From IMG/VR virus record IMGVR_UViG_3300028840_008185, positions 124,001 through 188,000 of that record: a stretch of 64,000 nt of DNA; one strand, given 5' to 3'. Every line of letters begins with the position of its first letter. Position 1 is the stretch's first letter. Below the pieces are notes generated by a model. The model worked only from the letters and a program-made list of their open reading frames with translations, was not told the DNA's origin and did not search any database. A program made the position numbers and the translations under genes. Shown piece by piece: positions 5,822 through 60,203 of the stretch.

Positions 5822-7422
5822 TATTCCTCCGTGGTTACATCGCTGCGGTTTATGATTTGCGCGAAAGCGTGAAGCTTTCTATCACTTCCACCATCGAGTT
5901 CGTTAATTATAGCATCCACTTGGCCAGCGTGACAATCATCTTCAAGCTCAAGATATTCTGCCAGTTCGCAGACCAGAGTGAAATCGTCCTCCAAAAACTC
6001 TGCCCGCAAAAAATCTAGCATCTCGCCCCAACGATTCCAGGTGCTTTCGTTGTAATAGAACTTACGAACATTGGCGACAGTGACCTCTGCCTCGCCCCCA
6101 AAAATCCTAACGAACTCGCGCACACCGCAATCTGGAACAGCATACGAACCTGCCAAAAATCTTGCGCTCAACTTTTTAGCCATCTTTCTCTCCAAGGAGC
6201 GCGGAGAGGGATTTGAACCCCCGACATCGAAAAGCTCTGCCAGCCTGAGCTACCCGCGCAAAAAGGCCCCCTGGAGAACCAGGGGGCATTAAAAACTCTT
6301 ACGACTACTGCTGAAGATCAAGCCACTTCTCAATCACCAGCACAACAGTGGGCGCAGACTCGGTGATAGGCATTGTTTCTAGCTTATCTCGAATCTCATC
6401 AACAACATCGGTGTTATCGCGGCATCTTTCACAGAACGTAATACCCAAGCTCTCAGCAAGCTCATCCTCATCGAGTTCATAGAGAGCATCGCAATTTCCC
6501 ATCTCTTCCAGAATGTCGTACACAGACATGCCCGACTTGTTCATGAAGGTTCTTAGCGTCTGCTCGTTCAACTCCACAACATCATTGCCAAATGCCTTGG
6601 CAAAAGTCTCAAGCAGGCAGGGATAGGATTCGCAGAAATCCGATCCTAACAAAACCAAATCCTTAAGTGAGGTTTTCATATTATTCCTCCTCCCCGTCTT
6701 CAAGCTGCTTCATCATATCCCCAACAAACATCGCCAGAAGCTGGTCTTTGGTTCGATTATTGGTCAGCTTGGTCGCAACCGCAGGCTTTAGATCGCCACG
6801 AGCAACGCAGTTCTCGCAGAACTCCAGTTTGAAATGCCCAGCAAGCTCTGTGATCTGCTCATCAGTGAGCTTGTTTGTGACCATGCGGGCGAGTTGCTCC
6901 TTATTGTAATCAGCACCAACCACCTTCCCGAGGTTCTGTGGAGTCGCCTCCATCTCGTTGCCAAATTCCCTAGCAAATTGCTTAGCTCGGTCACCCGCGC
7001 CAAAAGCTTTGATAAAGTTGGCCAAGGTAATAGTTTCCATTTTAGCCCTCCATAGCCTTCAGCGTAGCCTTGAGCGTCTCAAGATACGCCGTGTTTCTCT
7101 TCTTCTGTGGGGAGAGATACGATAGAGCCTGGGCAGTATCATCAAGGATGTCATGATGATAGTCGTCAAAGCAGCATTCACAGAAAGGAACCTCTAAGCG
7201 CTCTGCGAGCGCCTTGAAAGCATCCTCATCATGCTGGCTAAGCTTCTCCAACAAAATACCAGCAACATCCCCACCATCAAAGGTGTCCAGCAGTTTGGTC
7301 ATACCTGCGTCGGTAAGCGGAAGCTCATCACCGATCTGCTCGGCAAAATCCATGAGAGCACTGCCGCAAACGTCGTGCTCAAACTTCAAAACAACATCCG
7401 ACAACTTAAGCACTTCAGCCAT
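5821..7422 (-). CDS. Four tandem paralogous acidic ~120 aa proteins (5821..6183, 6305..6679, 6681..7040, 7042..7422)
   Basis: Shared F..(A/E/I)FG.E.E.T..N segment and LA(E/G).(L/F)..(F)CE.C motif: LAESLGITFCERC, LAGHFKLEFCENC, LAERLEVPFCECC, LAEYLELEDDC. Confidence 0.75.
6196..6259 (-). ncRNA. tRNA-like RNA lacking an anticodon arm (64 nt)
   Basis: Acceptor GCGCGGG/TCCGCGC, D-arm GCTC-AGGCTGGCA-GAGC, T-arm GGGGG-TTCAAAT-CCCTC. Only TTTTCGATGTC lies between the D- and T-arms. Confidence 0.75.
6260..6287 (-). terminator. Intrinsic terminator
   Basis: GCCCCCTGG-TTCT-CCAGGGGGC followed by CTTTTT on the minus strand. Confidence 0.8.
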
Positions 7423-15679: not shown

Positions 15680-16048
15680 TCATATCTTTTCCTTTTTGCA
15701 AGCTCGGCAGACAAAGAATCTATTGCCGCCAGCATAATTCTCTTTGAGGTCGGGGCTGGAGCAAGAACAGAAAGAGACTGTATTCACGACCCTACTGGGC
15801 TCATCCTCAATCTCTTCTATTACAGCAGTGCAATCATGGGCAATTCCAAGATTATAATCATACTCGCCCTCATAGAGATCTAGCAGTGTCCAGACCCAAT
15901 CATCAGGGTCGTAGTGTTCCCGTCTTTCTTCGGGCACCTCCTCAAAATCTACCACAACCCCAGGACCATAGTGCTCGCCGCAACAATCGAATACATCTAC
16001 AAAGTTGTCTCCAGGCTTCAGGTCACCCAACCTCACTGTTGTCGCCAT
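15680..16048 (-). CDS. Hypothetical protein with shared C-terminal zinc ribbon
   Basis: CSCSSPDLKENYAGGNRFFVCRACKKE. Confidence 0.7.
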   Translation of the reverse strand: MATTVRLGDLKPGDNFVDVFDCCGEHYGPGVVVDFEEVPEERREHYDPDDWVWTLLDLYEGEYDYNLGIAHDCTAVIEEIEDEPSRVVNTVSFCSCSSPDLKENYAGGNRFFVCRACKKEKI

Positions 16049-16247
16049 CCTTCTTCACCTTTGGCTTGTTCTTCAGATCCTCGATCCTCTTGGCAAGCTT
16101 GGCCCGTTCTTTCTTGGCTCCCTTCCCTTTACCAAGCATATCATCCAGCCTAGCCAGTTGCTCTTGGGGCGTGCGCCCTTCAGCAGCTTCTTTACGCTCC
16201 TTGGCTCGTTCTCGCCGTTCTTCTCTGTTTCTAGTCTTTCTAGCCAT
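16023..16247 (-). CDS. Small basic phage protein (RTPQEQLARLD...GAKKERAKL)
   Basis: AGGAGGA RBS; paralogous to the N-terminal part of 56602..56931. Confidence 0.75.
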   Translation of the reverse strand: MARKTRNREERRERAKERKEAAEGRTPQEQLARLDDMLGKGKGAKKERAKLAKRIEDLKNKPKVKKDGDNSEVG

Positions 16248-25082: not shown

Positions 25083-25159
25083 GGCACCCCCGGAGAGATT
25101 TGAACTCCCGACCAAAAGCTTAGAAGGCTTCTGCTCCATCCTGGCTGAGCTACGGGGGC
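25083..25159 (-). tRNA. tRNA-Arg(UCU)
   Basis: Full cloverleaf; anticodon arm GAAGC-CTTCTAA-GCTTT; T-loop TTCAAAT. Confidence 0.92.
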
Positions 25160-39459: not shown

Positions 39460-39918
39460 CTTCCCACAAACCTCCACAAAGCGTAATCTGATCGGCAATA
39501 GGAACACTGACAGGGGCGCGGCTGAATCCATCTTCCATCCTCTTTACAGCATTGATTCTTGTGAGGAACCAACCCCTTTAGGCACTTTGGGACAGAATCT
39601 TTACCGGGCACGCCGAAGTCTGCATGGGGGCAGCCTTGACAGTATTCTTTCTTAGCAGCGTCCCAAGCAAGCTCAAGATCCCTCTTGGTTGGGCGCTCTG
39701 GGTCCTGGCGATAGGGGCTGCTCATTAGTCTTCTTCCATGTAGCAGAAGTGCCCACAAGCAGGACACTCTCCCTCTGGGATGATTGCGCCAGGGGCAGCC
39801 AACTCGTTAAGGTCTTCAGCGCTCAGGGTTAGTTCAGCAGGATCGTAACGAGCACCACAATTCTCGCAGACAGCCAATCGCTCTCCATCCATTAGTCGTC
39901 CCTGTTCCTTTCCATTTG

Positions 39919-40000
39919 TGACCGGGGAGGGATTCGAACCCTCACACCCAGAGGTAGGGGATTTTAAGTCCCCGATGTCTACCAGTTCCATCACCCGGCC
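39919..40000 (-). tRNA. tRNA-Leu(UAA)
   Basis: Cloverleaf with long variable arm; GGGGA-CTTAAAA-TCCCC; GAGGG-TTCGAAT-CCCTC. Confidence 0.93.
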
Positions 40001-45245: not shown

Positions 45246-45785
45246 CTCACTTAATCCTTCCTGTTGATGTTACTGTGGATCTACTTTACTTTTGTCTCTC
45301 TTCAAGAGTGCCTCCGCGTTGGTGCAGAGAATATCAAGATCCCTGGCGTCCTGCTGGTCGATCAGCGGCACAATGCCGTCTTTCATTTTGAACATCAGCG
45401 CCCAACCAATCAGTTCGCAGGAGGCAGCGGCGCTTGTATCCCACTGCACACAGCCCGACTTAAGAAGGGCTCCATAGCAGGACGTAAACTTCTCCTGCAA
45501 CTTATCCATCGCCTTGCAGGGTTCAGCCGCCATGTATTTCCTGAGACTCATTTCACCCTCTCATTTTCCTCCAGAGCAGCATTGCCCCAGTCCAAAGAAG
45601 AACTCCCAAAGCCAGAAGCCCCTCGCCAATTCCCATACAACAGCAGAAAAGCATCACCCACCTAGAAGCTGAAGAAGTTGCAGTGCTTAATCAGGAAGAT
45701 CCCACCAACGATGAGGCCAATCCAGACCATCACCATAATGACCAACATACTCCCAAAAAACCTACTCATCTGCATTGTTTCCTCC

Positions 45786-50948: not shown

Positions 50949-51499
50949 GATTTCATCCCCAATTTCTCCCGGAGTTCCTGGATAAGATCCAGATACACCG
51001 GAATATACGTCCTCATCATCCTCGCAAGAGAGGGCGAGGTTTTAGGATGTGCGATATTCCTGCGATAGTTCCGAACGATAGCTCGGTAGTTACGAATCAT
51101 TCCAGCATAGAACTCATGGGAGCCGGGATAAGGCTTGCCTTTAGTCCAGTGCTCCAACAGATCCGTCACCACTGTTTGCATCTCTGGACTCGGTTTCATA
51201 CTGGCCTCTTGTGATTCCAGTGGTAGAGGTCCAGCGCATCCCTGAGAACCAAGTGCAGCGCGGCGTCATAAGAGATGCTCTTGTCTTCAGCCACTTCCAT
51301 TACCATCTTCACATCCTTATCGCTGAAAGTGAAGTTGGTTTTGTGCTCCACAACTGGATTGACCGCAGTGATTTCATCATCGTCGAATTCTACTTCCATC
51401 TCTGCGGTAGGAGTCTTCTCTTCGGCAAAGGCCTTCTCAGGTCTTACAACCTTGTTCTCTGGAACAGTCGGTCTCATCTCTGTCTCCTTTATTAAGTAG

Positions 51500-51574
51500 T
51501 GACCCCAACGGGATTTGAACCCGTGTCGCTGGCGTGAAAGGCCAGTGTCCTTGACCAAGCTAGACGATGGGGCC
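51500..51574 (-). tRNA. tRNA-Glu(UUC)
   Basis: Cloverleaf; CTGGC-CTTTCAC-GCCAG. Confidence 0.92.
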
Positions 51575-53609: not shown

Positions 53610-53954
53610 CTAGAAGGTTGGGGTTGAACGTTTCTCGGCCTGAACTAGTCGAGACTTCAAGCGTTTCATTAAGTAGCGGGCAACATCCAAGTGCCCGTTC
53701 TCAATCGCATCGTTCAGCGCATCGTATTGGTATACTGTGTCGTCAGCCTTATACTTCTTGATCAGGTGCTTAACGACCATCAGCAATCCACCACGAGCGG
53801 CTAAGCGGAGAGGGAAGTCAAGGCACTCCCTTGGATCTGCACCAGTCTTGACCAGCTTATCAATTCCAGCACAGACCTTTTCCTCCGTGTCTTCTTTCTC
53901 GGGATTAAAATAACTTATCAATTCCCTTAGTGGAACCTGTAGTTCGAGATTCAT
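53610..53954 (-). CDS. Ankyrin-repeat protein
   Basis: PLRLAARGGLLMVVKHLI..ADD; ALNDAIENGHLDVARYLM. Confidence 0.85.
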   Translation of the reverse strand: MNLELQVPLRELISYFNPEKEDTEEKVCAGIDKLVKTGADPRECLDFPLRLAARGGLLMVVKHLIKKYKADDTVYQYDALNDAIENGHLDVARYLMKRLKSRLVQAEKRSTPTF

Positions 53955-56022: not shown

Positions 56023-56099
56023 TGGTGCGCCCAGCAGGAATTGAACCTGCGGCCAACGGATTAAAAGTCCGCTGCTCTACCTGGCTGAGCTATGGACGC
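56023..56099 (-). tRNA. tRNA-Lys(UUU)
   Basis: Cloverleaf; GCGGA-CTTTTAA-TCCGT; encoded CCA. Confidence 0.95.
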
Positions 56100-56102
56100 A
56101 TC

Positions 56103-56126
56103 GGGGGAGCCCCGAAGGGCTCCCCC
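56103..56126. terminator. GC-rich hairpin between 56133 gene and tRNA-Lys
   Basis: gggggagccc-cgaa-gggctccccc. Confidence 0.65.
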
Positions 56127-56375: not shown

Positions 56376-56469
56376 GGTTTTCCTCCTTGGCTATTTGGGG
56401 GCCTACCCCCTGTCGTTGGAGCATTATGCTCCCCTTTGTGACCATAATTGGTCACTGTGGTCGTAAAAA

Positions 56470-56596
56470 CGGGAAGGCTACGCCGTGTAAGAAGCCCTGA
56501 TCATAAGTCACAGAACCAACGGCACTTAATCGCGGAGAGGAACCTCCCAATAAGCTCTGATCGACCGGGAGGGTCGGCTCAGTATGTAGCTCCCCG
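56470..56596 (-). ncRNA. Candidate four-way-junction RNA with loop-loop pairing
   Basis: Closing stem CGGGGAGCTAC/GTAGCCTTCCCG followed by TTTTT; three internal hairpins; CTCCC loop complementary to GGGAG. Confidence 0.55.
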
Positions 56597-56601
56597 ATAT
56601 G

Positions 56602-56931
56602 TTAGAAGCTAAACAAGTTGCAGTGAGCGATGAGAAAGATGGCCCCACCAATGACAGCAACCCAGAAAAGGATGAAAGCAATCACCACTATCAACTCCAT
56701 AGCTGTGAAGCCACCCTCCAGCCTCGCCCTCTCCTTCACAGCCCGATGTCCAGCAGCGTTCAGCCGTGCAAGCTGCTCCTCCGAACTGCGCTGCTTCGCA
56801 GCCTCCACACGGGCTTTCGCGTTGGCAATCTTCGCCTTCTGTTTGGCCCTGTAGGCTGCTCTCGCTTTGGCATTCGCCTCGGCGGTGAGGTGGCGGCGGG
56901 AAAACTGCTCCTTGCTATTGGCCTTAGCCAT
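56602..56931 (-). CDS. Basic protein with C-terminal type IV prepilin-like cleavage/methylation motif
   Basis: ...KERARLEGG|FTAMELIVVIAFILFWVAVIGG; AGGAGG RBS. Confidence 0.75.
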   Translation of the reverse strand: MAKANSKEQFSRRHLTAEANAKARAAYRAKQKAKIANAKARVEAAKQRSSEEQLARLNAAGHRAVKERARLEGGFTAMELIVVIAFILFWVAVIGGAIFLIAHCNLFSF

Positions 56932-57427
56932 TGTTGCTTTCCTCCTTGTTGGCGTTGCGCTCGGCTCTCCGTGCCTCTTTGCGCTTCATCTTCATGGTGG
57001 TGATGCAGTTGCGGAGCACCATTGCTGGATAATCCTGCTTAGTGTCCTTGAGCCTTGCCTCCAGCTCCCTGATATTCCTGTCACATTGTTTGGTAGTCAT
57101 CCCTCTTCTCCTTGGGTTGGCAATAACTTGTTTTTCGCGTCCGCCAGCGCCGCTGCTTGCTCGATGGAACATTGCGCCAGAAACTCATCGTTGATGAATA
57201 CCATTCGGTCTCCCGTTTCGGCGTACACTGCGTCCCCTATCTTCACACAGAGAGTCCCAGAGTCAGCCAGGAGACAGTTATCCGCGATTTCCTTGAACCT
57301 TTCGCGAGTCTCACGCTGCTTCCAGCCGAACATGTCTCTTGCTATTAACATCACCTGCACCTTGCTCAACGGAGACTGAAGCAGCGCAGCAATGGCTAGT
57401 CTTTTGTAGTAATCGTTTTCCATTGTC

Positions 57428-60117: not shown

Positions 60118-60129
60118 TGTTCTCCTTTG

Positions 60130-60203
60130 TGGGCCCTCTGGGATTCGAACCCAGGATCGACCGGTTATGAGCCGGCGGCAGTAGACCGCTGTGCTAAGGG
60201 CCC
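60130..60203 (-). tRNA. tRNA with CAU anticodon, probably Ile2 (lysidine type)
   Basis: GCCGG-CTCATAA-CCGGT; GGGCCCT acceptor with paired 1:72 and no 3 G-C initiator pairs. Elongator Met not excluded. Confidence 0.85.

Follow-up and report, generated by a model that had tools for sequence, protein, structure and literature searches.

A headless prepilin-like membrane module behind interchangeable leaders in a huge phage: a possible pilin mimic

We analyzed a 64,000-nucleotide stretch of DNA (the window), positions 124,001 to 188,000 of the IMG/VR virus record IMGVR_UViG_3300028840_008185, in which the gene at 56602..56931 encodes a 109-residue membrane protein of an environmental phage of about 450 kb. 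The features of this target gene, of the gene upstream of it and of two paralogous genes elsewhere in the window are as follows.

56924..57100, minus strand: upstream gene encoding a 58-aa basic protein; its stop overlaps the start of the target gene by 8 nt
56941..56947, minus strand: Shine-Dalgarno sequence AAGGAGG of the target gene, 9 nt before the ATG and within the 3' end of the upstream gene
56602..56931, minus strand: target gene (P0001), 109 codons plus a TAA stop
56710..56931, minus strand: residues 1-74, putative leader and cytoplasmic basic domain (19 K/R versus 7 D/E)
56719..56790, minus strand: residues 48-71, conserved core RSSEEQLARLNAAGHRAVKERARL, common to the product of 16023..16247
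56683..56715, minus strand: residues 73-83, GG/FTAMELIVV, class III (prepilin-type) signal motif with a putative cut at G74/F75 and E79 as Glu +5
56626..56694, minus strand: residues 80-102, lone hydrophobic helix, mean Kyte-Doolittle value up to 2.96 over 19 residues
56605..56625, minus strand: residues 103-109, tail HCNLFSF, the most conserved stretch of the module
45662..45775, minus strand: paralogous 37-aa membrane peptide with the helix end and tail IFLIKHCNFFSF and AAGGAGG 5 nt before its ATG
16023..16247, minus strand: free-standing 74-aa paralogue of the basic domain (P0002)

Because 56602..56931 has a strong ribosome-binding site, is found on seven contigs and has dN/dS values of 0.15-0.4 relative to its orthologues, it is a real gene. 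The protein is identical on the seven contigs, which come from several assemblies and include contigs of 452,599 to 452,631 bp. Comparison of the window with the L006 orthologue gave a dN/dS of 0.24 for the whole gene, 0.15 for the basic part and 0.39 for the module (residues 73-109), and thus the basic part is under the stronger purifying selection; module values of about 0.2-0.5 indicate purifying selection there as well. The 8-nt overlap with the 58-aa gene suggests an arrangement of the kind typical of translational coupling. The upstream product itself contains a conserved ...RNCITTM... stretch. An AlphaFold2 model of the 109-residue protein (mean pLDDT 88.5) has helices at residues 17-47, 50-60 and 65-73, then 77-107, with the helix break at residues 74-76 (G-F-T) falling immediately before the membrane helix. 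A Foldseek search of the PDB with this model gave no match, as expected of an extended all-helix chain. The net charge of residues 1-74 is +12 and, by the positive-inside rule, we infer that the N-terminus is cytoplasmic.

The 318-kb IMG/VR record (318,373 bp, G000) that includes the window derives from a huge phage carrying tail, ribonucleotide reductase and tRNA nucleotidyltransferase genes plus at least 38 tRNA genes. All but four of the 104 ORFs of at least 250 aa (100/104) lie on one strand, the GC skew is negative throughout, and the sample labels are sediment, seawater and marine sediment. The contigs of 452,599-452,631 bp belong to three assemblies and carry the target gene at differing coordinates, which suggests that the genome is complete, circularly permuted and about 452.6 kb in length. 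Given these near-equal contigs with the gene at different coordinates, the IMG/VR label of 'provirus' (79% complete) is doubtful.

Searches of Pfam and PHROGs with the ten genes neighbouring the target gave no match. Seven genes downstream of the target, the 114-aa product of 53610..53954 (minus strand; L004:5978-6322) has a precomputed ankyrin-repeat match (PF12796). The 226-nt gap that follows the target (56376..56601, minus strand) folds better than its shuffles (z -2.8). Its last ~85 nt form three short GC-rich hairpins before the ribosome-binding site of the next gene and are kept in L023, and its first ~60 nt are kept in L007. The gap had no Rfam match and may act in termination or regulation. 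At 56103..56126, between an 80-aa gene and the tRNA-Lys gene, a perfect 10-bp GC-rich palindrome (GGGGGAGCCC cgaa GGGCTCCCCC) looks like a terminator or processing hairpin. Single tRNA genes are scattered among the small ORFs of the window at 56023..56099 (minus strand), 25083..25159, 39918..40000, 51499..51574, 60129..60203 and 6198..6259; they comprise Lys-ttt, Arg-tct, Leu-taa, Glu-ttc and Met-cat plus one weak Rfam-only match, and 33 further tRNA genes lie within the first 50 kb of the record. Elsewhere in the record a PrkA/YeaG-like serine kinase (G000:C1:244742-246682, minus strand, corresponding to L011:9745-11682) matched phrog_22605 (E 3e-139); its homologues share 37% identity with it in Thermus phages phiYS40 and TMA, and 31-36% in uncultured huge phages of 595-642 kb (LR756511, LR745206, LR756502). 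A 1,504-aa protein (G000:C1:201177-205691, minus strand, corresponding to L009:6180-10691) has a tRNA nucleotidyltransferase (CCA-adding) domain in mid-protein (phrog_2244, E 1.5e-52) and large flanking regions without a named match.

Class III signal peptides have a hydrophilic N-terminal leader, recorded at 6-51 residues, and prepilin peptidases require Gly at position -1 (PMC6916266). The prepilin-like module of the target, residues 73-109, is composed of GG/FTAMEL, a 23-residue hydrophobic helix and the tail HCNLFSF. The first-pass annotation had read the C-terminal 35 residues as a class III signal leading into a hydrophobic helix without a pilin head, and this description held: a prepilin-type cleavage and methylation motif precedes an alpha1N-like helix, with G74/F75-T-A-M-E79 followed by 23 hydrophobic residues and a seven-residue tail. 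G74 provides the Gly -1 directly before the hydrophobic tract, and F75 to A102 is mostly hydrophobic with E79 at +5, in keeping with class III signals (about 21 residues, Glu +5). Residues 80-102 would be equivalent to the alpha1N and transmembrane segment of a pilin. The putative mature part is exactly 35 aa, behind a 'leader' of 74 aa, and since only seven residues follow the hydrophobic helix there is no room for a pilin head. The 'lollipop' fold is missing: alpha1C and the beta-sheet head are absent, the model having the single helix 77-107.

When the 318-kb record was scanned in six frames, one such motif was found at the edge of a hydrophobic segment (rough expectation, 0.004), and the target was the sole TIGR02532 and PF07963 candidate. 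The window copy is under every curated cut-off, with 13.4-13.7 bits for TIGR02532 (cut-off 16.3 bits) and 7.9-9.8 bits for PF07963 (N_methyl; cut-off 21.2 bits), and is the most degenerate of the modules (A+3, M+4). As the window copy alone is a weak match, the case for pilin likeness is carried by the orthologues. The 318-kb record of the ~452.6-kb phage gave no Peptidase_A24 or T2SSE match over cut-off and no other N_methyl candidate; lacking an A24 peptidase in this record, the phage would leave any processing to its host. A complex prediction of residues 55-109 with Pseudomonas aeruginosa PilD (LEP4_PSEAE), run without controls, scored 0.00 and is no evidence either way. A lipobox was considered and dropped as His is unsuitable at -1, as were a CaaX box, the Cys being six residues from the end, and the Flp motif G/xxxxEY, for which FTAMEL after the Gly supplies Glu +5 but not Tyr +6.

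Relatives of the module were sought by an exhaustive profile search of 1.8 billion representatives plus contig look-ups. The same module was found at the corresponding loci of related phages, identified as the same locus by synteny, in four architectures with leaders of 5, 31, 60 or 74 aa.

Window and L006: 58-aa gene, then basic domain plus module; leader 74 aa
L007 (P0004): 58-aa gene, then shortened basic part plus module; leader 31 aa
L023 (P0040; 12 contigs): 58-aa homologue joined at its C-terminal Gly straight to YTLVEL...; leader 60 aa
L022 and a JGI contig (free forms P0034 and P0042): module alone, 40 aa; leader 5 aa

The L022 free form (MKEDG/FTLMEF) has the canonical layout and its own AGGAG ribosome-binding site. 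In L023 (L023:4001-4288) the 58-aa homologue is fused in frame to the module and the basic domain is deleted to give a 95-aa protein on the 12 contigs; this is a natural gene fusion linking the 58-aa product and the module. Typical prepilin leaders are basic, whereas those of the free forms, MKEDG and MNNGG, are not. Relative to the recorded range of 6-51 residues (PMC6916266), the leaders of the window copy (74) and P0040 (60) fall outside, that of P0004 (31) falls inside and those of P0034 and P0042 (5) are about in range.

The residues on which the first-pass reading turned, Gly, Phe and Glu at positions -1, +1 and +5, are largely retained. The six modules are 45-53% identical and all have Gly -1, F/Y +1 and Thr +2; Glu +5 is present in five and replaced by Ala in P0042. 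The fusion to the basic domain fared less well as a recurring trait: it is present in L006 and, shortened, in L007, but the basic domain has been replaced by the 58-aa neighbour in L023 and is absent from the two free 40-aa genes. As four of the six have a truncated or substituted basic domain, or none at all, it is the module that forms the constant of the locus and not this domain. Gly -1, the one residue required by prepilin peptidases, survives every change of leader, including the Gly-Tyr junction of P0040, and is in our view the most telling fact at this locus. The headless mini-pilin proposed in the first-pass annotation has become more credible, given a module that stands alone as a 40-aa gene with a five-residue leader and a Gly -1 that is invariant behind four leaders.

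Profile comparisons agreed with the motif. N_methyl was the top or sole notable Pfam match of all six modules and, although the window copy lies below the cut-off, P0040 exceeds the gathering cut-off (26.1 versus 21.2 bits, E 5.9e-6). The PF07963 scores of the other orthologues were below it (P0003, 20.2; P0004, 16.4; P0042, 15.0; P0034, 14.0 bits), and TIGR02532 scores outside the window reached 16.1 bits, just under 16.3. The NCBIfam matches were to pseudopilin and pilin models (GspH and GspG in five of six modules each, TIGR02532 in four, and also a ComG pilin). A profile of the six modules, run against 177,635 PDB sequences, gave 21 matches at E<=10, of which 20 were type IV pilins or pseudopilins, all 20 in register with profile position 6 at mature residue 1; the best were PilA 9laa (E 7.6e-4) and Geopilin (E 1.6e-3). 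The full-protein profile retrieved true pilin N-termini from the 1.8 billion representatives at E 2e-5 to 1e-3, and in the ESM Atlas N_methyl clusters were nearest the free 40-aa form, at 0.82, which serves as a lead. Judged by these alignments and the six-frame scan, the likeness to a pilin N-terminus is specific and unlikely to be due to chance, and the module is very probably derived from, or a mimic of, such an N-terminus.

The family is small, with five clusters at 50% identity plus one paralogue. In IMG/VR viral contigs the module profile found no relatives and the full profile found free basic-domain genes alone. JGI metagenome contigs searched for module relatives returned the same phage and nothing else, and the 185,579 GTDB species genomes held no module relatives. 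Queried by tblastn with either the whole protein or the most canonical module, 50,697 phage records yielded no match (E<=1 and E<=10).

Small basic phage proteins form a widespread family, so far unnamed, that includes residues 1-72 of the target. The first-pass annotation had linked the 74-residue leader to the free-standing product of 16023..16247, and this homology was borne out: BLASTP aligned residues 48-71 with residues 25-51 of that product (E 1e-5), and both proteins were placed in one family alignment. In profile searches residues 3-73 aligned end to end with ~40 small basic phage proteins (E 1e-9 to 1e-3). The family core is R(T/S)PxEQLARL(D/N)...G..A.KERA(K/R)L, to which long forms add an N-terminal (W/F)xSRRH (fSRRH), and all of these motifs lie within residues 9-71 of the target; the same short loop ...GHRAVKERARL... 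occurs in the free-standing members P0049, P0058 and P0035. Searches of Pfam and PHROGs found no entry for the family. It comprises about 70 metagenome proteins of 55-130 aa with the near-invariant core RTPQEQLARLD..(F/L)G.G.GA.KERAKL. On phage-sized contigs, members have small genes as neighbours, with ligase and helicase genes close by, and a Candidatus Kaiserbacteria record contains one member. Members are normally free-standing and lie in phage early or replication regions; fusion to a membrane module is seen only in the lineage of the target's phage.

These properties bear on a reading in which the fusion exists for the sake of the basic domain, with the module holding that domain at the membrane as a pro-form until the host prepilin peptidase frees an active cytoplasmic effector. 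The lower dN/dS of the basic part in the window-L006 comparison (0.15 versus 0.39), its status as a full-length member of a family that is usually free-standing, and the fusion of two different basic proteins before the same site are consistent with such a role. However, the domain is cut to 31 aa in L007 and absent from L023 and the free 40-aa genes, 16023..16247 already supplies the phage with a free copy, and the family, without a Pfam or PHROG entry, has no assigned function. We consider this reading quite improbable. It is the PilD-released basic effector put forward in the first-pass annotation, an idea that is weakened because four of the six orthologues lack the domain or carry it shortened or replaced, although with strong purifying selection on its basic domain (dN/dS 0.15) the target's own phage might still make use of one.

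The best-conserved stretch of the module is not the pilin motif but the helix end plus tail, IFL(I/L)(A/S)(H/R)CN(L/F)F(S/T)F, in which the Cys, the Asn and two Phe residues are invariant in seven of seven sequences. The paralogous peptide of 45662..45775 shares the tail, and hence the phage has two members of an undescribed 'HCNxFSF-tail' peptide family. This peptide lacks the G/FTxxE motif and has no N_methyl match, and searches of Pfam and PHROGs found nothing. As it keeps the tail without the pilin motif, the core function may be independent of the peptidase.

The main rival to a peptidase substrate is an uncleaved, tail-anchored protein that functions through its helix and HCNLFSF tail, either as an oligomeric or as a target-binding peptide, the pilin-like start being a relic or a convergent helix cap that anchors the upstream fusion. 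Besides the conserved tail and the motif-less paralogue, this rival draws on the sub-threshold scores of the window copy and on a leader length outside the known range (PMC6916266). It does not readily explain why Gly -1 and Thr +2 are invariant, and Glu +5 nearly so, across four unrelated leaders at 45-53% module identity, nor why PDB pilins match in register and one orthologue exceeds the Pfam cut-off. An acidic residue kept five positions into a membrane helix is also hard to account for otherwise. On balance we doubt this explanation while taking it seriously.

Pilin mimics encoded by phages have precedents. In P. aeruginosa, prophage FimU proteins become part of the pilus and block phages that bind its tip, and Sztanko et al. 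(Cell Rep 2026) also described PilA-like proteins of virulent phages, one family of which is cut down to the first 60 residues (PMC12952977). This truncated 'P-PilA' (~60 residues) is found in six virulent Pseudomonas phages; pilus incorporation or inhibition of assembly was proposed for it, with the exclusion of pilus-dependent phages as the benefit (PMC12952977). PfsE of the Pf phages is a 30-residue N-in inner-membrane peptide that blocks pili via PilC and gives superinfection exclusion (PMC8764522), and the pilins of an archaeal provirus (SNJ2) are assembled by the host (PMC12426801).

The target, if it acts in this way at all, would resemble these systems in function, but it is a sequence relative of none of them. 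It is set apart by its very short putative mature part, its non-pilin tail and its long interchangeable leaders. With P-PilA it shares the concept of a phage-borne conserved pilin N-terminus without the variable head, in non-temperate phages, and the motif. It differs from the description of P-PilA in a mature part of 35 residues, the tail HCNLFSF and leaders of 31-74 aa that are interchangeable; the BLAST-level similarity to the first ~60 residues of host PilA that defines P-PilA is not seen, nor was there a tblastn match in the 50,697 phage records. Pilins and T2SS pseudopilins (IPR012902, N_methyl, TIGR02532) have the same Gly -1, F/Y +1, Thr +2 and Glu +5 followed by a hydrophobic alpha1N, whereas the target lacks alpha1C, a head and nearby assembly genes and in the window has a leader beyond 6-51 residues. 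PfsE is likewise a tiny phage inner-membrane peptide, with an N-in topology that we infer for the target and a pilus effect that is proposed for it; PfsE acts on PilC through an aromatic YAWGW motif, absent from the target, and has no prepilin motif, and no sequence relation between the two is visible. The Flp/Tad pilins and Geobacter PilA-N (Geopilin domain 1) resemble the target in having very small mature subunits that are nearly all N-terminal helix. These are cellular proteins of 45-61 residues with dedicated machines and the Flp motif or a longer helix; the target is shorter and has a distinct tail.

The small size of these subunits raises the question of whether the target could be a genuine minimal pilin, built into the tip or shaft of host filaments without stopping them and altering the receptor surface as phage FimU does, or forming thin filaments of its own like Flp and the short Geobacter pilins. 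F/Y +1, Glu +5 and the alpha1N-like helix fit this idea, Geopilin (chains of 61-90 aa) is among the best PDB matches, and phage FimU and the SNJ2 pilins are assembled by host machines (PMC12952977; PMC12426801). Still, 35 residues without alpha1C or a head leave nothing past the membrane helix for a filament surface, the 318-kb record has no assembly genes and the Flp motif G/xxxxEY is absent, and we think a true subunit very unlikely.

Small single-pass phage peptides are often of the holin, antiholin or depolarising type, and the window encodes two such peptides. The target might likewise time lysis or perturb the membrane and be unconnected with type IV filaments. This would leave the conserved pilin motif unexplained, however, and the setting does not support it: there is no endolysin or spanin context (the ten neighbours tested had no Pfam or PHROG match), the C-terminal tail is not charged, and the gene sits within a block of small genes and tRNAs resembling an early region. 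We regard it as extremely unlikely.

The reading that we favour, tentatively and at somewhat under an even chance, is that the module is a headless pilin mimic that would be cut by the host prepilin peptidase, which would also methylate F75, and would interfere with type IV pili or type II secretion. Gly -1, F/Y +1 and Thr +2 in all six modules and Glu +5 in five, behind four leaders, favour it, as do the exact joining of P0040 at the Gly that prepilin peptidases require, the in-register PDB pilin matches, the P0040 score over the Pfam cut-off and the retrieval of pilin N-termini. Further support comes from the canonical free 40-aa form with its AGGAG, the helix break at residues 74-76, purifying selection on the module and the precedents of the phage FimU and PilA mimics (PMC12952977) and PfsE (PMC8764522). 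Against it count the window copy as the weakest match, under the curated cut-offs; a folded 74-residue leader that exceeds the 6-51 range (PMC6916266); a non-pilin tail that is the most conserved part and is kept without the motif at 45662..45775; and the absence of Glu +5 from P0042 and of basic leaders from the free forms (MKEDG, MNNGG).

The proposed protein would be a composite of the inner membrane, made of a borrowed basic three-helix domain and a 'headless prepilin' (cleavage site, alpha1N-like helix and seven-residue tail). Its translation would be coupled to that of the upstream 58-aa gene through the 8-nt overlap and the ribosome-binding site, and it would insert N-in with the C-terminus outside, as suggested by the +12 net charge of residues 1-74 and the single hydrophobic helix. 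We assume that the host has a prepilin peptidase and a type IV filament system. As the conserved motif suggests, the peptidase (PilD/GspO/ComC, family A24) would cut after G74 and methylate F75 and, by analogy, the 35-residue product could mimic the membrane-embedded N-terminus of a pilin or pseudopilin. Such a product could engage the host pilus, T2SS or competence pilus and block or cap assembly, or titrate the peptidase or the platform. The phage would probably gain by excluding competitors that depend on pili, or by shutting down motility or secretion. The basic domain would be a variable, dispensable leader that in the target's phage may also be set free in the cytoplasm.

An extension that we consider unlikely would make the prepilin peptidase a maturation protease for interchangeable cargoes: basic pro-forms (the EQLARL-KERARL domain or the 58-aa neighbour), anchored at the inner membrane by a portable 35-residue cassette, would be cut after the invariant Gly into two products, both active: a cytoplasmic effector and a minimal N-methylated alpha1N poison of type IV filament assembly. 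If this dual-product scheme were true, the target would have the longest known prepilin leader and be the shortest known prepilin-peptidase substrate, and it would be the first case of a prepilin peptidase releasing a cytoplasmic protein. Neither the HCNLFSF tail nor the unnamed basic family has been characterised, and both are frequent enough to merit a name. A peptide that is indeed cleaved and targets the pilus or the secretion machinery would define the minimum recognised by the prepilin peptidase and the assembly platform as 35 residues without a head; being naturally reduced to alpha1N, it would also be useful to type IV filament researchers as a probe or inhibitor. The headless mimic, if real, would carry the class of phage pilin mimics beyond temperate Pseudomonas phages into uncultured huge phages, as a modular cassette able to sit behind different proteins.
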